Origin: Bigelowiella natans CCMP2755
Taxonomy: Eukaryota > Protista > Cercozoa
DNA length: 64,000 nucleotides
Direction: 5' to 3'
NCBI GenBank assembly: GCA_000320545.1
Contig: ADNK01002828.1
Coordinates: forward strand, 30,323 to 94,322
Part shown: one piece after another, positions 11,943-64,000 of the stretch
How positions within the stretch are numbered: position 1 is the stretch's first letter
Layout of the letters: every line of letters starts with the position of its first letter
Made by a program: the position numbers and the translations under genes
The notes under the pieces: generated by a model
Databases searched by the model: none
Told to the model about the DNA's origin: nothing
Seen by the model: the letters and a program-made list of their open reading frames with translations, nothing else

Positions 11943-12444
11943 TTCACAGTCGTTTACATATGCTGCCTTGATTAATGGCGTATCGTCTATGAAAATATAA
12001 TCACAAAATTCCAAGCGATCGTCACCTTGCCCCTGCTGTTTGCTTCGAACTAGCAGCAAGTTTGCTGTCAATTTTTGACTCCCCTGACCGATCAGTAACT
12101 TTCAGAGCCAGATCTGTTTTCAATTTTCCATTGTGTCCGTCAATTAGAACTTCGGTCAGTCTCTCTGCGATGTCCTCTGCGTCCCCGCTGGTGTCGGAGA
12201 GAGTGACAGCAAGGGCTTCTTCAAGACCAATGGAGGTGGAGTTTCCGTCAGAAGCTGAGTCCAGATCCAGTCCTTCATCCGTACTTTTACTTGAGTCAAG
12301 CAAGTCAGCTTCGGAGGTGATGGAAGAGAGATTGAGTCGATCAGCAAGGTCAATCAGATAGCGGCTATCTGTCGACATATTTGCAGGGGGGAGGGCGGGA
12401 GGTGGTTTGCTTTTTAAAGTGCAACGGTCAGTTTTAAATGGCAT
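4945..12444 (-). CDS. PIBF1: PIBF1/CEP90-like centriolar coiled-coil protein, multi-exon
   Basis: Long coiled-coil exons at 11376-11849, 11049-11324, 10582-10902, 9236-9424 and 8160-8534. The motif ...IKGYEQLESEIDIAILTAG...SLGAIPTTAQRRMKQ|ALKLAQKLLEK matches the PIBF1 signature as I recall it (YEKLEKELD...[20 protein letters not shown]). VELLRQDKMYL resembles LLQKDKEYL. The terminal exons are approximate. Confidence 0.8.
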
Positions 12445-12559: not shown

Positions 12560-14700
12560 CTACTTTGGACGACCCGATCGTAGACCATCGTGTCGACATT
12601 GCCTTCAGAAGGTTCATTGTTGGAGTGCATGCATTGCGTCGCCGCCACATTGAAGCTAGTTGCATTGCTTCACAAATGCTGGATCGCCAATTCACAAATC
12701 CTGCTGGTTTCACCAGTTAGCCCTCATTGAAGTCAGTTCGAGGCACTGCGTTTCGCACATTGCGGGTGTCTTGTCACGTTTTGAAAACGTGGGAAATCAT
12801 CACGTTTGTCTTTGTTTGTCTCGCATTGCCCATCTAGCCGTTGGTGTCAGGGTTGGGGTCAGGGTTGGGGTTGGAGCAGCAAACTTCTTTGCAACGTTTT
12901 GGAAATGCAGTTTCACAGTTTTTCATCATTGTCTCGTTTTGCACCCAAAATCGATTGACCATTTTCACTTGGTTCAGCGCATTTGCGATTCAACGCGCGC
13001 GTTTGACAACACAGCACGCAGCAACGCAACGCAGAGCAGCATTGATTGATTCACTTGCAATTTTTGCAAGACGGGCGTTTTTTTGTGACGAGCAGGATGG
13101 CAGTCGGTGCAGCACTTCCACCCGCACAAGTGCATCTGTCGGGAGAGAACAACAACATTGCGATGCAAGAGAAAGTGCACCTTCACACAACAATTGAATC
13201 AAAGTGCAATTGTGTCATCATCATTGCATCTTTTGCCCTGCTTGCGACGACGACCAACGATTGAGTCCACGTGTTGTTTGATGACAAACTCGAGAATCGA
13301 TTCAAAGGGCTAGAGGGGACAACCTAGCAACGTTCCTCGCTGAATCCACGTTTCACTCCCCCTTTCGTGTTCGATTTTGCGATGTGCAGATCGCTGAACG
13401 TGCCAACGGATCCACCAAACACGTGTGAATTTCTGGTGTGATGCACCTTCCCAATCTCCACCACCACGTTTTTTGCATCGTCTTCTTCGCCTCCTTCGCC
13501 CACCTCCTCGTCTGTCGTTTTCAACACCATTTCCACGTCCTGTGTGGCAACAGCGTCTGTTTGTGTTGGTGTTTGTGTTTGTGTTTGTGCACACGCACAT
13601 TCACACACAAGACACACACACACCCACACCTAGCTAGCTAGCCAGCTAGACACCCACACACACCCACACACAGTTCTGGAATTGAGGAATGATGGCCCCA
13701 CTCTGCCACCTTTTTGAACCACTCTGGCACTTGCGATTTGATAATTTTGGGCGCGTGACGCCAGGTTTCATGCAGGTTGGTGTTCACAACCTCCATTGCT
13801 TTCTGCAGCATGTTGCTGCACTGCTGGTGCAGTTTTTGAGGCAGGCCCCTTCCAGTCATCGAATGCCACCTGCTGGCCTGCCTTCTCCCCTTCTTTTTGT
13901 CTTTGTCTTCCCATCCTCCCATTTTTTCCCTTTCCTGTGCACGATGATGATGATGATGGACACAGCAACATGGTGTGTGATGAACATTGTGCATTGCTGT
14001 GTCCATCATTGTGCAACATGCAAGCATGCATCACATCATGCGAAGCGAACGATCGAAGCCAATGAACTAGTGAATGCCAATCACCACAAAAGGAGCGAAC
14101 CACACACACAGCAACCAACCTAGCTAGCTAGCAACCCCTGTGACCCCATCCCCCCTCATGCTAGCATGGCACGTTAGAAGCACACATTGTGGCTAGCACA
14201 GACATCTAGACGATGCACAGCGGCGTGCGCATGAAGTGCGCGAAAATTCGCTTGTCCTTTTTGGACAATGTTTTTATCGATTTGACTTCCGTTACATGAT
14301 GGCACATTTTGGGCAAAAATGAACGTGCATGAATGCTCCGGAATGTTTCGGGAACATTCTAGCATTGCTGCCGCATCAACGTATGACGGTAGGACTCTCG
14401 AACCGGGAAGCTTGGGATGGCATTGCGCACATCACGCATGCATGCGCACCACTGTAGACCAGCTGCTGCATGAAACAGCACACAAACAAGCTCTGCTTGC
14501 TAGCTAGCTTGGTGTGAGAGCTTGTTGAGCTTGTGACATTCCAAAACAAGTGACAATCTGTGATCTTGTGATGTTTGTCACAGCATGCAACAATGCACAG
14601 TCTAGACAGTAAACGACAGTAAACGTTGCACAGTTGCACAGTGCATCACATCGACGATGAAATCCGGCACATTAATCGAAATTGTAGTGGGTATCTCAAG
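12560..14700. mobile_element. TpA-depleted degenerate repeat island A (unclassified element remnant)
   Basis: 5 TpA in 12601-13620, all in TAG context. Shares a block with 34419-34515 in opposite orientation, including a 25-bp exact match (12735-12759 vs 34454-34478). No intact transposase is recognisable. Confidence 0.6.
12847..12876 (+). repeat. Mutated interstitial telomeric repeat (TCAGGG TTGGGG TCAGGG TTGGGG TTGGAG)
   Basis: Five hexamers in register. Each equals TTAGGG with TA changed to CA or TG (the last has one extra change). Confidence 0.75.
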
Positions 14701-14795: not shown

Positions 14796-15227
14796 TTATT
14801 TACACCAGTGATCTGATTTTTTTTTAGTTCGTTGCTCCAAGAGGTCACTAGCTGAACCTTTTGTAATATATCTCCCACCTACATACATGAACTCCTTTGC
14901 AGAGGGGACACTTGAATTGGCCATCATTTTCTTTAAATTGTCTTCCCCGATGGACTTAAATAACAAGGCTTGAGCTCTATCTTCTGTAAGTGGCTGGGCC
15001 GTTTCCTTTTTCTCTTTTTTCAATTTTTTCTTCCTCTTTTTTGCTCGTTTATCCTTTTTATCGAAGCCTCCCTATGTGAATGCAACTTTTGAGGGTAATT
15101 CTGGGCGTAATAGAAATTCTTCAACCTTCAGTTTCAGCATTCCCTTTCTAGTTTTCTTCATAACCTCCGATAATCCCTCTCTTTTCTTGGACCTCTTTTT
15201 TGGCTTCCCTTCATTCTTGGTGCTCAT
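14796..15227 (-). pseudogene. Lys-rich ORF of about 143 codons interrupted by one in-frame TAG
   Basis: ATG at 15227 gives MSTKNEGKPKKRSKK...PSKVAFT*GGFDKKDKRAKKRKKKLKKEKKETAQPLTEDRAQALLFKSIGEDNLKK...SDHWCK*. The TAG is at 15074-15072 and the frame stays open on both sides of it. Confidence 0.45.
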
Positions 15228-18456: not shown

Positions 18457-20016
18457 ACAACACACCATGAAGAAGAATGAATGAATGATGAAGGCCGGTG
18501 GGGAGGGGAGGAAAGGAAGAAGAGAGATTGATGGATGACTAGAAGAACATAGCAGCGGCCTGGTGGTGGTACTACCACTTGAGAAGGGTGAGATGATGAT
18601 GATGATGATGATGGTGCATCGAAGATAGACGAAGAAGGGGAAGCAGCAGTAACAGCTGCAACATCCTAATATAAACGATAACGTGCTACTTCGATCATCG
18701 TAGTATCATATATTATTGTTATTGTTATTATTATTATTATTTATTATTATTAAATGGTAGGGTGCAAGCTATCCTTCCCAAATGGCTCTGTTATCCGGTT
18801 GGATCCCCTGGTAATAAATAACAACGATATTCCTTATCTTGCTAATACTACTAAATAAAGTGGTGCTACCGACCTATCCTATCCTATCAGGTTTGAACGA
18901 TCACGAGCATTGTCGATTATTTCTGCAGGGGAATCATTAGGTAGTACAATACTAGTAGTTATAGTAGTAGTAGTAGTAGTAGTAGTGTCGTCATCGTCGC
19001 TCAAAGAATGAATAAAAATAATAAGGTGATAATCAAATCTTGAAATACCAGATATAGTAGCAGCAGAAACAACAAGAGAAGATCGTTCATTCAAAGAGAG
19101 TTGTTGTAATTTTAGATTATTGTTGCTGGTATTTTTATTAAAGGCACGATAATTACTTTATTTGGAGGTCCATATATCGTAAATATGTGCAACTGCTGGT
19201 CTGGGCTATTCTACGCTACAGGAATAGCCAATTTGGTATGTTTTCGTATTGATGATAGATGGATGATGATGATAATGATACATCCTATGGTGACAACTGC
19301 GATGACGATGGTGGTTACTGGTGGTAGGTGGAGATGTTCATCAATCAATCAATCTATCTATCTATCTACCTATCTATCATCGGAGTATTATTATTATTTC
19401 ACCATCCAATATCTTTTCATTCGTCTCTCATATATTATCCATTGACTACTCGCTCTCTCAGGTCGTTTTTGTAATAATATCTCTCATGCTATTCGAGACA
19501 CCTGAGGAAATGAAAGAATGGTTAGGACATACTACTAATATCAATGATGATGATGATGATGATGAAGATGATGGATTAGGGTTAGGGTTAGGGTTAGGGT
19601 TAGGTATCTATTGATACTCCCATTACTACCACAAATTCGCTGCTGCTGCTTCTACTACTACTACACGTTTTCTATGAAAACAACAAGGGAATAATAATAC
19701 CTAACTTAAGCACTGTTTCTACTACTACTACTTCTACTACCACTACTACTACTACTGCGGACAAAATCACGCATCACATCACATCACAACACATTTTAAT
19801 GCTGCTTTTACTGCTGCTTGTGGATGATGAAGTGTTGTACTCTTCAGTTAAATCCGGTTTATTTGTGTTAACGCAGCAGCAGCAGCATATATTATTCTTT
19901 CTCTATACCACCTGCTGTTGAATTGTCATCTAGATACAAATTGGTTTTCTCCGTCTATTTTTTGCACCAACTAGTCCCTCAACACCTCTTATCTCGATTC
20001 TTCTTTTCCCTATTTT

Positions 20017-22429: not shown

Positions 22430-23900
22430 GAATGAGTGAGAGAGGTAGATAGCATAGGCAAGCAGGTGCCAGGCCAAGGACATATGTATAAATGTAGTAA
22501 TTGTCATCATCATTGTGACGTGAAAAGCTTCACATATACTTTGAGCATGACCTTTTTGAGGTTGGGCATCATGTTGCAGTAGGAATCATGAGTGTGCATC
22601 ATCTCACTTTGCATGCAAAGATGTAGTTGTTGTAAATAACGTCGATAAATCCATCTGGAACTTCAGAAGTTCAAAATAAGTATAATTTATTTCATCCTTG
22701 GAAGTGCTATACAGGCCTCCTTGCGTGCTATTTCCATGCTCTACAAAAATGTTAGACCATCATGCATGACTTATAAACGGCTGATACGTGTAGATATTGG
22801 GCATGCCATTGTACCAAGAATATTATTCTTGCAAACACAAAATTGAAAATAATAGACATAAATCATATCATGCATATGCATTATATTGCATTGTCTATAA
22901 CAAATATATCTCCTATAGTCGTTGATGTTGCCACGTGCAATAATGCACGCTCTGTGAAGAAACAAATGAGCTTTGTTGAAAGGCTTTGTCTGGGACACAT
23001 TTATGATAGCTAGATAGACACATAGTGACGTGATGTACATCATTCATGTATCATATTACATTGTCTATGATGAAGATAACAACAATGCACCTGACCACCT
23101 AGATGATCATTCCTGTTCGTTGTGGTTCGCTGTGCACGAACTGTGGCTAGTACTGCGAAGTGTCGTAGTGCATTCATGCATGCATTGCCGCCATCTTGTA
23201 ATCTAGCCATGCTAGCATGTCTGAGAGGAAGTCTAGAAGTCCGTTCATGCCACATGGCACGCGTCTACACATGCTATGCTAGCATGGCTGACTATATGAC
23301 AATCTCTCTACTGTCGTCTAGCTAGCATGTACGTCTAGACGTACGTACTAGCAACCATGCTAGCGCAGCAACGGCACTACCGCACCTCAGCAAAGCCGAT
23401 ACCAACGGCACAGCTCGGTCGCAATTGCTCTGTCAGTTGTTCCCTAGTTGCGTGTCATCATGTCTGTCTGTGCATTGTCCTTGATGCCTAGCGCATGCGT
23501 GTGCAGGATGACACATCTAGACATGCTAGCATGTGATGTCGACATCAGCACGCAACCATCGTCTAGATTGTGTCCAAGTTTACGGACAGTTGCTACATGC
23601 ACTGCGCTTTACATGGCCATCTGTACGTAGATGTAGCCATGCACACAATAATAGACATAGTAATAGCATATATAATAATACATATGATATTACGTGTCTA
23701 TAATCACAGCTAGACAGCACTACTGCGAGCGCATCTATTCATCGACAACGACGCAGCAATCGCGTAATCGTGGCCAAACACAACATTCATAGAATACTAG
23801 ACGACACCATCATCCACATGAACTGTGCACAACAGCGCTCAATGAGCTTTTACTTGCAACAATTATATAGTATATACGTTGTGTCTTTTGTTAAATACTA
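22430..23900. other. Intergenic block rich in CATG/CTAG/GTAC/TGCA, microsatellite-free; probable partly mutated repeat remnant
   Basis: The composition differs from the neighbouring introns. In 23221-23640 nearly all remaining TpA are flanked by C or G (CTA, TAG, GTAC). No credible ORF. Confidence 0.35.
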
Positions 23901-32559: not shown

Positions 32560-34560
32560 TCGAAAACCAGAACAAGGTCTCTGATGTATACACGCACGCA
32601 CACACATCGCACTCACACATACACACTCGTGTTGTGTTTGTGTGTGTGTGTGTGTGTTGCATCACACATGCGCATCTAGGCATAGCATGTCGCACGTCGA
32701 TCGGTGTCTTTCGATGGTGCGTGCAACATGCGCCCAGCACGTATGTGTTTTGTTTTCGATTCGTTGCTCCTGCTACCCGCCCTCCATCTAGCCGCAACAC
32801 CCTTACTTCGCCTTCATTCGTTGTGACACGCCCTCATACAAGCTGTGTTTTCTTTTCAGCATTGGCAGCGACATCACGCACATGCGTCTACACACGCAGC
32901 GACACACAATGGACGTGCTTGGTGATGTGACACACATTGCACACAACGTGTGCCGATGAAATGAAGAGTGCATTCACCTGGACACGCGACGTGCATTCAT
33001 CTGCACACCTTTGCAGCGCGTGCGTGCTCGCTCTAGCGCCATCCATCGTTTTTCTACGAGCGTAGTGCATCATGGCATGTGTCATTTTATTTGTTCACAC
33101 GTGCATGCATGCGCTGTCGTCACGCGGTGCTAGCGCTAGAGCGGTGACCATGTCTGGCGGAGGTGGGCATGCGCTGATCACTGCTAGATCAGATCACCAG
33201 CTAGATCAAGACGTGCAGACATGTTCCAGAAAATGTGAATGCGCCATGCCGCCAATCAAGCAATGCACGTGTGTCTGCTGCATGCGTGCCAGCGTGGATC
33301 ACAGCAGGAGCGAGGGTTCATTCCTTGATTCCATCTGCTCGCACAATTGACGATGGTTGTAGTGCCATGATGATGTGTCTATTATCATGGCACACTTGAT
33401 CATGATCGAGTCTGCTCGCTGCGAGGCCACGCTCTGGCGCCGTGCTTGTCACAGCGCTGAAGCGCTAGACTAGCAGAGCGTGTCGCCGCAACTGGGCAAA
33501 TGTAATTCGTCACACAATGGACACAGCACATGCTGTGTTGCACACATCACAGGTGCGTGTGTCTGTGGTCACAGCTGTGCATGACAATGGACGTGCACAG
33601 TGCGAGATGATGCGCATTTGTTTGTCGTCGTGACATCGCAACAACTGATTCCTTGTTGGTCTTCTAGCTGGGAGTCCACAACCATTCTTGTTTCACGAAG
33701 AAGACGGTGATGTGTGCGATTGTGGTTCGAGAAAATCAAAACCTGAATGGTGGCGTAGACCGAACTCCGAGGTCATCTCACACCAAAACAGCTGATGTCA
33801 CGAATGCCGACGCAAATTGGCCAGAGTTTTGCCTGCTGAGAAATGACAAATCATTGGAACTCACTTGCAATGCTCACGATTGGTCATCGAGACATTCTCA
33901 GCGCATTTCAAGAGATGAAGTCAAATTGACGCTTGATTCGTGATTTTCTGCAGGGTGAATGACAATGACACCAACCATTGCAACCCATTGCTCTCTGAGG
34001 CCTTTTCCACCCGAAGTTTTTGATTGCATCATCACTTCATCCCCTCTCGTCGCTTTGACGTGGGGCTACCCGTGCATCATCCGCAGAATCCACCACGCGT
34101 GATGAGCATTGGCAGTCATGGCAGCAGCTTTCGTCGTTTGCACATTGCGAAGTTGCGAAGCTGCACGTCGTGCACGATGTGCAGGATTTCCAACGCCGAT
34201 CGAGTCGCACGCACAATCAGAAACCGAGGAACAGTCACCTGTCGCCCCACATGCTTTGAAGTCGCAGGGACAGTCCCCGTTTACGCAGGTGCTTGGGGAA
34301 CAACAAAAGCACCACACAACACGTGCGCACGTCCATTGCAAGGAGGAGGGTTCTGGACACTCACACAAGAATGTTGATCATCACCTCAATGAACAATGAA
34401 CAATGAACAATGATGATGAACTACATTTCCAAAACGTCACAAGACATTTGCATTGTGCGAAACGCAGTGCCTCGAACTAGCTTCAGTGAGGACTGTGACC
34501 AGTGAACTCGCAGGTTCGCATCATTGGTTCTGCTCTGGAGCTTCAAACAACAATGAAGAA
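32560..34560. mobile_element. TpA-depleted degenerate repeat island B (same family as island A)
   Basis: 16 TpA in 33121-34560, 13 of them in CTA/TAG context. Its 3' end is homologous to island A. Confidence 0.6.
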
Positions 34561-34767
34561 TGAAATCCCTTTGAAATGAAGCCATTTTTGTTATGCGTCT
34601 ACTCAGATATCCTTTAATCAGATAGAAATCCGCTTCTGTGTGCTTGCAGGGTCAGAATTTTTGTTACGAAACACCTTGGCACATGGATTGCAAAGCCCGA
34701 GATGTTCCAGATATTTTTGGATAGTCTCCACTGTCGAATCCCGGCATTCGGACATAACAGGGTAAAA

Positions 34768-34950: not shown

Positions 34951-35136
34951 CATTGTTCTGCGATCTCATCACTCAGTTTTGTTGCAGCTTTCTTCGGAGC
35001 CGCATTTGCAAAATATGTGGTAAAAAAAGGCTTGCATTTTGTTCAGAATGAGTATCGGCTCCCTTCGTTTGAGAAAGAAATCCACTTCTGTTTGTTGTTG
35101 CACAGTTACGCCAGTGTCCACAGGCAGTTCGTTAAC

Positions 35137-35554
35137 ATGTCCTGCACCAACTCCACGCTCAACAAACTCAATGCACTGATAAAATGCAACAAGAAAGAAG
35201 CAAAGGTAGTAGACGGTTGAGTGCAGAATATTCCTATACCTTAAGTTTTGCGCTTCAATGTTTTGTTAGACCCTCATCGTGGTGCATGGTCCATACATGA
35301 ACTGAGGGCGTTGGAACCACAACATCTTACGAGTTCATGAGTTGATCATGAATCTTACCGATGCTGGATTTCATGTCCAGCTTAAGCATGATATGAAGGA
35401 AACTACTTGGGAAGACCACGGAGATGTTTCTGTTGAAGACATCAAGGGCAGAACTCTCGCCTATGGAAAGCAAGTCGTCCACAACAAAAACTTTTCGAAG
35501 TCTAAGAAGGCATTTGATGATTTAGCTAAGACTGCAATTTCCAAAGTTGAATAA
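35137..35554 (+). CDS. Candidate selenoprotein, UPF0728/C10orf53-like, 117 aa, copy 1 (exons 35137-35205, 35270-35554; TGA 35303-35305)
   Basis: Spliced: MSCTNSTLNKLNALIKCNKKEAK|TLIVVHGPYMN(TGA)GRWNHNILRVHELIMNLTDAGFHVQLKHDMKETTWEDHGDVSVEDIKGRTLAYGKQVVHNKNFSKSKKAFDDLAKTAISKVE*. The pattern GPY..G..H..R...L...L...G..V.L resembles UPF0728 (recalled, not searched). Confidence 0.6.
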
Positions 35555-35610
35555 CTAAAAGTTGAAAAAGTAATTTTTGAAGAGCATAATGACAGTGTTT
35601 GAAACATCAC

Positions 35611-35680
35611 TTCCGCTCCAGCTAACCGTTGAAGGATGCATCCAAAAGCTTTCAGAGTGCAAATGCATCCAGAGGAACTT
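35611..35680 (+). promoter_or_regulatory. Candidate SECIS-like hairpin, copy 1
   Basis: TGAA-ggatgcat-cc-AAAA-...-atgcatcc-AGAG, with 11 nt from TGA to AA and 26 nt from AA to GA. The base before TGA is T rather than A/G and helix I is weak. Confidence 0.3.
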
Positions 35681-36529
35681 GAATCAACAACATGGAACAT
35701 TGGTGATACTTTTCCTTTGAGAACAAGGAGAATCATTCCTTTAAGAACAAGGAGGACTATCAACCACGTGTGTTGTAGCTAAGCAGTGGCGGGCATCATG
35801 CACCGCATTTACTAGTTCAACTGGGAATGGACGTGAAACATGTCAACAATTTGTCAATTTGGATTGTCTTTCTCATGTGCATTTGGTGCACACGCAGGCA
35901 ACCTGTCATTGTTATCATGCAGCTTGTTTCATTGATTTTTTGGGTTTTGTTCTGATGCAAAATGATGGACATGGCGATGTGATGTGCACAAAATATGCAA
36001 TGTGCGCACGCTAGCATGTCCATGATCCCAATGAAATGTGTGCAATGTACACTCGCCTACGCACACATCTAGACATGTAAAAACTTTGGCACCGCATAAG
36101 CGTTCTGCCACGCGCAATGATGAATCTAATTCTACCAAACTCACAGATAAAATGAAAAGACTGTGTGTGTTTCATGCAGCTTGCATGATCTGATCTAGCG
36201 ATGAAGATGTGGTCAGTCCATTTTTTACATCAGCCATACCAATTTTCGCGATGGAAGTACGTGTACTTAGGCAGTTATGCAACCCTTATAGAACAATCTA
36301 TGGCGTTTCATCATTATTAACAAATGTTGCAACAATGCAATATGGGCACATACGATGTAATGACTGGCAGTCGTTTGCAGCAATGCCATTGTACGGTCTA
36401 GCTGTAGCTAGCGTGACAATTAGATCAACAACATTTTCATGCACAGAAACATGAGCAAACATCAGTCATCATATGTCTAATGTGCTTTACGACTCGCAAA
36501 ATGTTACATTATAGCCCATCTACGTCTCA

Positions 36530-40339: not shown

Positions 40340-40810
40340 TCGTTCATGAATTTCTGGATGACATTATTCTGCGATCTCCTCACATCCGTTGGCTCCAAAA
40401 ACATCAGCAGACCGCAGAATCTGCCATTGATTTTTCCTAATGTCATCCAGAAACATTACAATTTGATGGCAGATATCTGACAAATCTAGATCTAAATCCA
40501 GGCTAACTTTTAGATAGATCTACAGGCCTGTAGTCTACCCAGATTTTGGAATAATTTTTTCCTGCCGAAAGCAAAAAACCGGGACAGATTTTCCAATCCC
40601 GGGATTACAGATGCGACACAAAATGAAAAAGCGAATACATGTACATGTAAATCTAGATCTAGATCTAGATCTATCTGATAAATCTAAATCTGCCAACCAC
40701 AAAACGTTACCTGCAAAGCGAACAGAATACGTCAGATCTACCCAAAAATCTGACAAATCTGACCAATCAATATCTGACCAATTTGATAAATCTGACGGCA
40801 GATTTCGGGA
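40340..40810. promoter_or_regulatory. Palindrome- and AGATCT-dense region between divergent proC and duplicated gene copy 2
   Basis: A 15-bp inverted repeat (40351-40365 / 40439-40453), the 14-bp palindromes CTACAGGCCTGTAG (40520-40533) and TACATGTACATGTA (about 40637-40650), (TAGATC)3, and repeated ATCTGA(C). Confidence 0.35.
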
Positions 40811-41006
40811 AGGTGTCATCACTCTGATTGCTATCTCATCACTCAGTTTTGTTGCAGCTTTCTTCGGAGTCGCATTTGCAAAATATGTGGTAAAAAAAGG
40901 CTTGCATTTTGTTCAGAATGAGTATCGGCTCCCTTCGTTTGAGAAAGAAATCCACTTCTGTTTGTTGTTGCACAGTTACGCCAGTGTCCACAGGCAGTTC
41001 GTTAAC

Positions 41007-41423
41007 ATGTCCTGCACCAACTCCACGCTCAACAAACTCAATGCACTGATAAAATGCAACAAGAAAGAAGCAAAGGTAGAGACGGTTGAGTGCAGAATAT
41101 TCCTATACCTTAAGTTTTGCGCTTCAATGTTTTGTTAGACCCTCATCGTGGTGCATGGTCCATACATGAACTGAGGGCGTTGGAACCACAACATCTTACG
41201 AGTTCATGAGTTGATCATGAATCTTACCGATGCTGGATTTCATGTCCAGCTTAAGCATGATATGAAGGAAACTACTTGGGAAGACCACGGAGATGTTTCT
41301 GTTGAAGACATCAAGGGCAGAACTCTCGCCTATGGAAAGCAAGTCGTCCACAACAAAAACTTTTCGAAGTCTAAGAAGGCATTTGATGATTTAGCTAAGA
41401 CTGCAATTTCCAAAGTTGAATAA
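41007..41423 (+). CDS. Candidate selenoprotein, UPF0728/C10orf53-like, copy 2 (exons 41007-41075, 41139-41423; TGA 41172-41174)
   Basis: The coding sequence appears identical to copy 1, including the in-frame TGA. Confidence 0.6.
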
Positions 41424-41479
41424 CTAAAAGTTGAAAAAGTAATTTTTGAAGAGCATAATGACAGTGTTTGAAACATCAC

Positions 41480-41549
41480 TTCCGCTCCAGCTAACCGTTG
41501 AAGGATGCATCCAAAAGCTTTCAGAGTGCAAATGCATCCAGAGGAACTT
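41480..41549 (+). promoter_or_regulatory. Candidate SECIS-like hairpin, copy 2
   Basis: Identical to 35611-35680. Confidence 0.3.
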
Positions 41550-42283
41550 GAATCAACAACATGGAACATTGGTGATACTTTTCCTTTGAGAACAAGGAGA
41601 ATCATTCCTTTAAGAACAAGGAGGACTATCAACCACGTGTGTTGTAGCTAAGCAGTGGCGGGCATCATGCACCGCATTTACTAGTTCAACTGGGAATGGA
41701 CGTGAAACATGTTAACAATTTGTCAATTTGGATTGTCTTTCTCATGTGCGTTGCGTGCGCACACGCAGTTAGACAGGTGTTTTGTCATTGCTAGATCATC
41801 ATTAGCCAGCTTGTTGTTTGCCCTGTGATGCACAACTGCAATCTAGCAATGTGCGATGTGCTCACAGACGCACACATGTAGACACTGCACGTAGCGTGCT
41901 GCCGCAGGCAACGCAATGGACACCACCTGTGTGGCAGTCAGCATCGTACACAGTTGTAATGCAAACTCATATCTACTGCTGCATGTGTCTGTGACTGGCC
42001 AGCGCGCGGCGTGCGCGTTTCATCAAAAAGATTACATCATGTACTTGACCTTCTGGGTCCCTTGCCATCCTACGTACTGCATGCTGATATTTGGATGTCT
42101 GCATGTTATCGGTTTGCACTGTGTGCATAAGGTAGACAAAGTGTGTAATTGCATGCTATTTATCACATATTACACATACGCATGTCTATTGCACATCATT
42201 TGAATGCTTTATTTGCTACCGCCTGTGATGAGTAGGAACAAGCTCACAAAATGACACAGTACTACGCAAAACGTCATACCAAA

Positions 42284-44635
42284 TTACATGCATCGACAAC
42301 AGTTCATATTTAGTCCTCTTCGCACAACATCATTTGACGATTGGACGACATCTGGCTCACAATCTTCAAACTGCTTTGAGTGCAATTTACATGCATGAGT
42401 TAAAAATTGTTCTGCTGATAACGTTGCATGCAGGAGTTTTTTTTCTTGAGTGTGACCATTTCGATCCTCGTGTAACGAACGATAACCATTGCTATCTCTG
42501 GAGTAAAGAGTTGCATATGTGTATGTGCCAGCGGCAGTTACACACTTGTCCTCATAGTCAATGAATGATGCAAAGGAAGGATAACCTACAGGATAATCTC
42601 CACGATTAGCTAATGCATATATGTGTGCATATGTTCCCACCCTTTGTTGAAGTATTGCTGAAATCTTTCTCATTTTTCGCTTGAGCAAAAACCATGAAGT
42701 TCCCAGGAGACTCGGGCATTTCTTCCACACAGGCAATATCGATGTTTTTCATCTTTATGATGCAATTCAGAAGTGCCACTGGGGAGATTCTAAGAACACA
42801 AATACACAAAAATATTAGGTTTGTTAGCATCAACTCACATGTAGTAGGCATCAGAGCAACATGGTGACACTACTTATTTCATTGAATTTTCAATATTTAA
42901 TAGCACACCAATAAACAGAGCTCAGCAGCACCCCATATTTCCTTACACACCTCTGTGCCTTAACAGGGACGTGAAAAAGAAGAGCAACTCCCTTTGGTTT
43001 CAGGATAGTTAATACCATCTCAACGACTGCTATTGGATCCACCGTGTGATACAAGGTGTGCCGCGACCAGATGACGTCGAACATTATATCTGTAGCTTTG
43101 CTAAGAGCAGGAAGTAGCGATGTGCAACTTCCTCCAATCATGTTCTTTGCATCTGAGCCAAATTCACATTCATGGCGATGATTTGGGCTTTATTAGAAAG
43201 CTTACCTAATTTAGATGAACACTTATCCCTTGTTTTATTCCTACTTCCATTATGTAACTCCTCCAATAAGTTGTCGATGTTAGCAACAACGTATGAAGCG
43301 TCTGGAATCGCACTAGCACCAGGTGCTACTGATGGTGATGGTAATGGAGACATTGTCTGTCCCACTGCCGATGGTGTAGCAGTTACAGTGGCTTCGGTTG
43401 CAACTGATGCTTCAGATCGTCGGTAGTCAAGAGCACTAATGCCTATCATTCCATCCATAGGAACCCCGAACCTTTGGTTAAGACTTCGAAGAAGCTCTCC
43501 ACTTCCTGTTCCGAGGTCAAGGAGTTGAAATCTATCATAATCTTTCGTACTATCCTCAGATTTAAATTGAGGTTGCTGCTCCGATTGTCTCGATTGCTGG
43601 TGTTGTTGATTCTGGCGGTTCTGCCTGATAGCATCACGATGTCTATTACGCAGTACATTCATTATAATTGAATGCTTTACATGTTACAGAGCAAGTTTAC
43701 ATACCTCCTTTGGGTGATCAGATTTTCGAAAATTTTATCTAAGAAAATAAACTTTCCCTCCCTATTGACTATTATTCGGTTGCGCCTAAAAATTATGATA
43801 TTAGGCTGTACATGAGAAATATAAATCGAGGGAGCTGGGTGAGATAGAAGAAAGAAAACAAAGTTTCAGCGGAAAAATTGCAAGGAAGAAAGGACAGGGA
43901 AAGTGAAATAGAGAGAGGGTAAAGTCCGACGATGAATCGGTGTCCTATTTACGCGAACGAGTTGTGTAGTGAAAATTTAGGTAGCAGAGAATTACATCAG
44001 GGGGAAGGACTTAAACAATCGAATATTACTTGCATCTAATCAAACCTTGAATTGGTCATTGGAAACACACTTTCTCCCATGTTGACCCACTGCCTTCGAG
44101 ATGGGTTGTTCTGTAGGGCATTGAACTTTGATTGAATCGCCTTTCGGACATCCTCTGGCCTTGTGGTGTAAAGCAAGTTTACTGATGTTGTCGCTGCTAA
44201 TCCTGAATTCATGCCTATGGACATCTGGTTTTTGTTCCAGCTGCCTCTGGAAGGAGACTTTCCCTCCTCCACCCTACCCTGTGCTTCCTGATTTTATTAC
44301 CATATCCGTAGAAAGGGGTAGGTACTGTACGTAGATCTATCGAAACAAGAACAATTACAACACCTCACAGCAACAACTCCTGACAGCAACAACTCCTGAC
44401 AACAGCAAGACAACAACAACTCCTGACAACAGCAACAACTCCTGACAACAGCAACAACAACAACAACAACAACAAGTCTGAATTCGATCATTTCTCTTTT
44501 CTTGATCATCATTGCTTCTCCTTCCCCTCCCTGATCGGTCACATCATCATCATCCTGGTCAATAGTCATCACCATCACACAGAACCACGTCGTCTTCCTC
44601 ATTGATATCGACACGGATATAGCTACTACATGCAC
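42284..44635 (-). CDS. Class I SAM-dependent methyltransferase, multi-exon
   Basis: Motif I FQLLDLGTGSGELLRSL, post-I IGISA, and MFDVIWSRHTLYHTVDPIAVVEMVLTILKPKGVALFHVP, typical of Methyltransf_11/25-like folds. The 5' exons are uncertain and the substrate is unknown. Confidence 0.75.
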
Positions 44636-62937: not shown

Positions 62938-63099
62938 GTCTACAAACAAGGCATTTACCTTCTTCTTAGGTCTCGAATGTTGTTTTCATTCATGGAGAAC
63001 AAGGTAAGAATGGCGGAGGGTGAGATCAGAGGGGTATGTATGATGATGTAACAGATGGTAAAAAACAGTGTCTAGCTCATGCATGGAATTGTCGGTCAC

Positions 63100-63732
63100 T
63101 GGTAAAAATTGACAACGATGTGATTGGAACGAACATCAACATTCTAGCATTGCAAACATCTAATGAGATTGTTGTCTTCATCATTGATGTCACTGTCAGC
63201 GATTTGACTTCATTTGTGTTCCAGTTGAATTCAGGGTCGCATCAGCCAACACGTTTGCAACGCAGCCTTTGTCAGAAGCTGCCAGATGCAAAATTGCATT
63301 GTGAGATCATGTTTTTCAATCAGCACCTGTGAAATCTGCACTCAATCCATGTGCATTTTGTCATGCAGCCGTTGCAGCATCATGCCACGTGCTGTGAGTG
63401 CATGCACACCACTTGTCAGTGCAATCACCAAAGTGGGAAGTGCCAAACACAATGGACACAGTGACAAGTCATGTCGTGTCGCTCGGCGCCCAGCGTGTGA
63501 AATCTGCATGTGCAACGCATGTCCATGCACGTGTTTGTCAGCGTGCTGCAGCACCATTCGAAGACACATGGCTGGTGCACATCACGTGTCCACAAATGAC
63601 ACGATTAGACAAAAACTCTCCAAGCAGTGTGGGTGCCAACTGAAATCAAATTCAAACCACATCTTGCCCAACAACAGGCAACATCGCAACATCAAAAGTG
63701 AGCTGCCTCAAAAACTGGCCAACACTTTGGAG
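63100..63732. other. Short subtelomeric TpA-depleted tract
   Basis: 3 TpA in 63121-63720, all in CTA/TAG context. Confidence 0.7.
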
Positions 63733-64000
63733 TTAGGGTTAGGGTTAGGGTTAGGGTTAGGGTTAGGGTTAGGGTTAGGGTTAGGGTTAGGGTTAGGGTT
63801 AGGGTTAGGGTTAGGGTTAGGGTTAGGGTTAGGGTTAGGGTTAGGGTTAGGGTTAGGGTTAGGGTTAGGGTTAGGGTTAGGGTTAGGGTTAGGGTTAGGG
63901 TTAGGGTTAGGGTTAGGGTTAGGGTTAGGGTTAGGGTTAGGGTTAGGGTTAGGGTTAGGGTTAGGGTTAGGGTTAGGGTTAGGGTTAGGGTTAGGGTTGT
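63733..64000 (+). repeat. Telomere (TTAGGG)n, about 44 units, right chromosome end
   Basis: An uninterrupted TTAGGG array runs to the window end with the G-rich strand 5'->3' toward the terminus. Confidence 0.98.

Follow-up and report, generated by a model that had tools for sequence, protein, structure and literature searches.

Short TpA-depleted islands near a chromosome end of Bigelowiella natans and the probable footprint of TpA-specific hypermutation

What has emptied a stretch of intergenic DNA near a Bigelowiella natans chromosome end of the dinucleotide TpA? In the window, by which we mean the whole stretch of 64,000 nucleotides analysed here, TpA is almost absent from a region that we term island 1. 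TA is the ancestral state there, the change is confined to TpA and has both strand outcomes, and it is sharply restricted to regions between genes. In all likelihood, a regional process acting on DNA has converted TpA to TpG or CpA nearly to saturation over island 1, leaving the signature that arises de novo in B. natans mutation-accumulation lines. The preliminary description of this DNA knew of no named mechanism, a statement overtaken by a mutation-accumulation preprint in which a TpA-specific hypermutation of B. natans is described (Mettrop et al., 10.64898/2026.01.13.699255), the only paper on this signature that a full-text literature search returned. According to this work, the mutation rate of two integrated, silent virus regions exceeds that of the remaining genome about 1000-fold; of the 231 de novo changes recorded in these regions, 230 are A>G or T>C and essentially all fall on TpA, and windows that are poor in TpA but rich in CpA+TpG form 124 clusters across the genome (10.64898/2026.01.13.699255). 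Our locus is most probably one further instance of this process rather than a new system. In the course of events that we propose, T:A to C:G transitions at TpA on either strand would have run almost to saturation over island 1, with the same signature as the de novo changes in the silent virus DNA; the enzymatic step we infer, and its candidates are ranked below.

The footprint in three gene-free islands

The TpA-poor regions of the window and the chromosome end are as follows.

12601-14160, no strand: core of island 1; 14 TpA against 98.2 expected (Poisson P = 2e-26), 12 of the 14 in CTAG
14161-14700, no strand: right shoulder of island 1; partial TpA depletion, CTAG-rich (7 of 20 TpA in CTAG)
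32650-33450, no strand: left zone of island 2; partial TpA depletion, CTAG-rich
33451-34600, no strand: core of island 2; 10 TpA against 74 expected
about 63051-63740, no strand: island 3; 7 TpA against 50 expected; subtelomeric, directly adjoining the telomere
63733-63998, plus strand: terminal (TTAGGG)n telomere; about 44 units, unmutated, giving the ancestral state for the fossil array discussed below

In the first part of island 1, 12601-13620, our recount agrees to the base with the five TpA previously listed, namely four CTAG (12657, 12835, 13311 and 13325) and one TTAG (12718), where 65.9 would be expected from the segment's own base composition (Poisson P = 2.7e-22). The earlier statement that all TpA but one in 13621-14160 are CTAG holds equally, with eight CTAG and one ATAA (at 13742) making up nine TpA against 32.2 expected on the same basis. 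TG and CA, described as abundant, reach observed/expected ratios of 1.2-2.1 within the island, CpG stays at about 1, and the GC content of the core is 49.6% against 38.8% in the background. TpA recovers gradually across 14160-14700, and the neighbouring DNA, whose introns had been described as full of TA, has an observed/expected ratio near 1.

Island 1 occupies the gap that separates a minus-strand open reading frame (12022-12444), likely to be a first exon, from the following gene on that strand near 14800, and it ends about 160-220 nt upstream of a gene start; it is intergenic, subtelomeric, non-coding DNA. Ten of its open reading frames gave no Pfam match and hence no trace of a viral or transposon protein, a protein database search with an island reading frame was equally without a match, and Pfam recognised nothing in seven flanking frames. 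The frames within the island are long because the stop codons TAA and TAG have been erased. Rfam and tRNA scans of the 64-kb window yielded no family and no tRNA. What can be recognised in island 1 is a decayed repeat of about 180 nt, a fossil telomere array, microsatellites and three CA-rich/(CTAG)n motifs. Di- and trinucleotide microsatellites are very dense in introns and intergenic DNA throughout the window, where they produce long homopolymer-codon reading frames that are not genes. The genes are intron-dense; 42419-44320 on the minus strand holds a six-exon gene for a Methyltransf_23-type methyltransferase, with short exons and introns of about 50-260 nt, to which a JGI transcript (L001) maps at 98.5% identity, and one window reading frame matches an MMETSP transcript at 99%.

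A scan for TpA over all 64 kb revealed islands 2 and 3 in addition to island 1, all three of them gene-free gaps. The 1-kb windows covering them have Rho(TA) values of 0.11-0.35 and Rho(CA+TG) values of 1.52-1.81. A patch at 35814-36047, in which only CTAG, TTAT, ATAT and CTAG are left as TpA sites in 234 nt and which carries GCTAGC/TCTAGAC motifs, may be a fourth, partial island. From the terminal (TTAGGG)n array it follows that the window represents a chromosome end, TTAGGG being the canonical telomere repeat reported for B. natans (PMC13746701). The telomere repeats themselves are unmutated although the adjoining 680 nt are TpA-erased.

The composition of the pooled islands balances as expected for a conversion. 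TpA makes up 0.91% of dinucleotide steps against 8.38% in the background, a deficit of 7.46% that is nearly matched by the gain of 7.02% in TG+CA, while pyrimidine-purine steps in total are unchanged (27.1% vs 25.6%) and GC content is 48.7% vs 38.8% (+9.9 points). After random in-silico replacement of every TA in the window's ordinary sequence by TG or CA, this converted background correlated with the islands at r = 0.93 in its strand-symmetrised 3-mer spectrum, against 0.28 for the unconverted background; the corresponding values are 0.87 vs 0.30 for 4-mers and 0.80 vs 0.31 for 5-mers. CpG is 1.5-2 times more frequent in the islands than pure conversion of the background predicts. An apparent strand asymmetry of the products, with CA exceeding TG, was rejected, as it vanished on removal of (CA)n tracts: 378 CA then stand against 336 TG (p = 0.12), and the process therefore acts on both DNA strands.

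Could the same deficit have arisen by selection against TpA in intergenic stretches, exerted by TA-targeting transposons, by a nuclease or through the stiffness of promoter DNA? The confinement of the three islands to gene-free gaps and the proximity of island 1 to a gene start would suit such a scenario, but most other intergenic and intronic DNA of the window has normal TpA, and junk such as the decayed repeat and the fossil telomere array has been erased as well. Moreover, the replacements consist of the two transition products only, a mutational rather than a selective signature, which makes selection a poor explanation that we consider improbable.

Ancestral states in a dispersed repeat and in telomere units

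Direct evidence for the polarity of a TpA-converting process comes from the following sequences, where L002 and L003 denote two metagenome contigs.

12650-12826, plus strand: decayed copy of the repeat in island 1; six of seven ancestral TpA converted (four T>C, two A>G, no transversion)
34375-34560, minus strand: copy of the repeat in island 2; 88-92% identical to L002 and L003
L002:70-256, minus strand: L002 copy of the repeat; unclassified, unmutated
L003:1362-1548, plus strand: L003 copy of the repeat; unclassified, unmutated
12847-12870, plus strand: fossil interstitial telomere array, TCAGGG TTGGGG TCAGGG TTGGGG
19576-19599, plus strand: control, intact interstitial (TTAGGG)4 array of pure TTAGGG in TA-normal DNA

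The only segment common to islands 1 and 2 (12700-12816 vs 34514-34399, inverted, 76% identical) contains an invariant core of 23 nt. When metagenome contigs were searched with a degenerate version of the core, TG being written as TR and CA as YA, it was found in L002 and L003, which share an element of about 180 nt that is 95.6% identical between them and lies in unrelated, TA-normal flanks; the element is therefore an interspersed repeat. It terminates in (CATTGTT)3, has a mild predicted fold (z = -2.2) and is present in a second partial copy at the opposite end of L002; Rfam and tRNA scans of the two contigs gave no match. The label 'repeat island' that had been given to island 1 thus fits insofar as one repeat copy of 120-180 nt is present, but not beyond it, since the islands have nothing further in common.

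As reference for our alignment (A2) we took the seven TpA common to L002 and L003 in the well-aligned core. The fate of these sites in island 1 is given above; in the island 2 copy, four of the seven were lost by transition and one by transversion. Neither island copy has gained a TpA relative to L002 and L003, and at non-TpA positions the island 1 copy differs by 22% and the island 2 copy by 8%. The two island copies disagree in their derived state at three sites (CCAG/CTGG, TCAG/CTAG and TCAC/TGAC), and for each pair the sole ancestor one step away from both is the TA state found in L002 and L003. Judged from these alignments, the direction of change in the repeat reads unambiguously as TA to TG/CA, albeit in a small sample.

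The second source of polarity is the fossil telomere array, in which none of the four TTAGGG units is left, CpA having replaced TpA in two of them and TpG in the other two. Its degenerate pattern has a chance expectation of 0 (100 shuffles), with the caveat that the 12-nt unit could be a duplication following a single pair of changes. Taken together, the direct evidence for polarity comprises 14 TpA comparisons and four telomere units, a small sample in which 10 of the 11 losses at the 14 ancestral TpA, and all four telomere changes, are T>C or A>G.

The interleaving of the two products bears on a further possibility, namely ADAR-like A-to-I hyper-editing of an RNA that was subsequently reverse-transcribed and inserted. 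ADARs prefer a 5' U or T neighbour, in line with the TpA context, but favour a 3' G, which is the context least hit in the islands. The former preference has also been raised in the preprint (10.64898/2026.01.13.699255). An edited copy would carry the changes of one strand, yet TpG and CpA are interleaved here even within 24 nt, and graded borders, microsatellites, a telomere array and the lack of retroelement features all argue against a retro-copy, an origin that we deem highly improbable.

Most of the 1.6 kb of island 1 is without a known unmutated progenitor. When each island was compared with the window by self-BLAST and by a local alignment tolerant of transitions, no unmutated homologue emerged, and viral contigs scanned with the degenerate repeat core gave no match. 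Together with the CpG excess, this is what could be put forward for the view that the island is foreign or otherwise unusual DNA, natively poor in TpA, and that no mutation process in this genome is involved. However, host-type sequence is found in converted form inside the island, in the shape of telomere repeats and of a repeat with unmutated copies outside, the k-mer spectrum equals that of converted local background, and the same signature recurs in three unrelated islands; a native deficit is thus very hard to credit. The transitions of TpA to TpG or CpA on either strand that had been postulated from the composition are borne out by mass balance, in-silico conversion, telomere fossil and polarised repeat alignment, the last with TA to TG/CA changes in the island copies and outside copies that still bear their TpA.

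Survival of CTAG

Three tandem CTAG arrays lie in island 1 and its shoulder, each beside a CA-rich tract.

13630-13649, no strand: (CTAG)5 micro-array, one unit already CCAG
14120-14131, no strand: (CTAG)3 array
14500-14507, no strand: (CTAG)2 array

CTAG accounts for 18 of the 33 TpA surviving in the island cores, compared with 136 of the 4920 background TpA (odds ratio 42, P = 2e-19), while the non-CTAG contexts together are retained at about 5%. Its density is 5.3 per kb in the islands vs 2.3 per kb in the background, or 3.5 vs 2.4 per kb with tandem arrays counted once. Is CTAG then spared, as had been proposed? The enrichment among surviving TpA stands, but not the exemption, as ancestral CTAGs are converted in the alignable repeat and in the CCAG unit of the (CTAG)5 array. 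One ancestral CTAG of the repeat has ended as CCAG in one of the islands and as CTGG in the second, and a CTAG found in L003 alone (CTAC in L002) reads CTGG in island 1; in the island 2 copy, one TTAG has turned into CTAG. The conversion products CCAG and CTGG together reach 6.8 per kb in the islands vs 3.5 in the background, a twofold difference.

For comparison, the 235 de novo TpA hits in Table S2 of the preprint, strand-normalised, comprise 80 TAT, 74 TAA, 58 TAC and 23 TAG (10.64898/2026.01.13.699255). Relative to the background TAN shares of our window, which are only a proxy, TAG reaches about half of its expected use. On the reference strand, the TAG-type hits of Table S2 divide into 19 T>C in CTA and only four A>G in TAG, while the other contexts are balanced (32/26, 38/36); gene orientation or avoidance of stop codons may underlie this imbalance. 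A strict block by a 3' G was rejected in view of the 23 TAG among the published hits, the loss of half-site TAG contexts almost as complete as that of others, and the conversions of ancestral CTAG in the alignable repeat.

If a following G is given a simple additive penalty derived from the half-site contexts (retention 6.8% vs 3.5%), and if the ancestral density of CTAG equalled that of the background, about one CTAG should survive, where 18 are observed. A native richness in CTAG of the repeats from which the islands were seeded would reconcile the two figures, and the unmutated repeat of about 180 nt does contain three CTAG. CTAG would accordingly be a slow context, its rate being lowered several-fold by the following G in either strand of the palindrome, and a CTAG-rich ancestry of the seeding repeats would be a second reason for its presence among the survivors. 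Slow context and ancestry together probably account for the dominance of CTAG. In a separate block, 23000-23700, TpA is normal and CTAG reaches 20 per kb, with recurring GCTAGC, CATGCTAGCATG and TCTAGAC motifs that the shoulders of island 1 and of island 2 also contain; this block may represent the CTAG-rich sequence class in a related, unmutated form.

Enzyme candidates, known systems and targeting

Which enzyme could act in this manner? To an ADAT2/3-like deaminase that acts on adenine in DNA we would grant not quite an even chance. Such an enzyme fits the TpA rule because the natural tRNA substrate, A34, always follows U33, and A-to-I deamination by ADAT2/3 and TadA-type enzymes is equivalent to A>G; unlike our islands, with TAG as their least-used context, their natural substrates often have G at position 35. 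An ADAT2-like adenosine deaminase has been proposed by Mettrop et al., a B. natans homologue of ADAT2 exists, and DNA editing has been reported for the ADAT2 of amphioxus and trypanosomes (cited in 10.64898/2026.01.13.699255). Some other mechanism is possible, if doubtful, and oxidation or modification of the T in TpA, followed by mispairing with G, would be an unlikely route.

Among the systems known, the hypermutation of viral DNA in B. natans is closest to what we describe, being regional and consisting of T:A to C:G changes only at TpA, on both strands, with loss of TpA and gain of CpA+TpG. Our islands differ in being short, subtelomeric and devoid of a viral or transposon coding trace. 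Fungal RIP resembles them in being a regional hypermutation by transitions that approaches saturation, prefers a dinucleotide and affects non-genic or repeated DNA. However, RIP changes C to T at CpA and thereby creates TpA, whereas the islands lose TpA and rise in GC; the assertion made at the outset that RIP cannot yield this pattern was therefore correct. APOBEC3/AID and ADAR hypermutation are likewise deaminase-type, with context-dependent, clustered transitions directed against invading nucleic acids, but APOBEC and AID give C>T, and ADAR, whose substrate is RNA, alters a single strand of each molecule, unlike the changes seen here in genomic DNA on both strands.

A TA-specific A:T>G:C hypermutation of defence-like character has only recently been reported in a eukaryote. 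What our window adds is that the process also affects intergenic and subtelomeric stretches of non-viral DNA only 0.7-1.6 kb long, which lie below the published detection rule. This rule demands at least three consecutive 1-kb windows (10.64898/2026.01.13.699255), and none of the three islands is able to satisfy it in any phase. The telomere-repeat fossil and the small repeat family provide internal ancestral states for context-specific rates, and CTAG, its behaviour now quantified, acts as a slow context. All these additions, the negative result on duplication given below among them, offer a guide for enzyme assays and for a genome-wide re-analysis. CTAG, telomeres and telomere-repeat fossils are not mentioned in the preprint (10.64898/2026.01.13.699255). 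Its Table S2 does contain nine de novo TpA hits beyond the two viral regions, two of them on scaffolds that lack virus-like ORFs and several no more than a few kb from a scaffold end; for the viral regions themselves, it gives four of the T>C changes in ATG or ATT contexts (10.64898/2026.01.13.699255).

With respect to targeting, a natural control is found close to island 2, at a distance of a few hundred bases.

34959-35897, plus strand: 940-bp duplicate, 99.0% identical to 40829-41768; TpA kept, 35-36 per copy

The two copies differ at few positions, only one of them TA/CA, and as TpA is intact in both, duplication as such is not the trigger; in this respect, too, the process departs from RIP. 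The islands, for their part, share at most 120-180 nt with one another, and the intact array at 19576 implies that telomere repeats by themselves do not suffice to set the process off. Of the suggested targeting to repeats or heterochromatin, the repeat trigger is not supported, given the untouched pair, while the gene-free, telomere-linked position of the islands would fit silent chromatin. Targeting by chromatin state or silence is more likely than targeting by sequence homology. Going further, we tentatively consider that the process may be aimed by chromatin state (silent, telomere-proximal, repeat-nucleated) and not by foreignness, and that, jointly with this, CTAG may be a specifically refractory tetranucleotide, be it through the specificity of the enzyme or through a protecting base modification. 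If this were true, it would open a direct way towards identifying the enzyme, and the same system would extend to many short intergenic islands that the 3-kb rule of the preprint misses. The 940-bp duplication includes coding-looking sequence (ORF 40611-41138).
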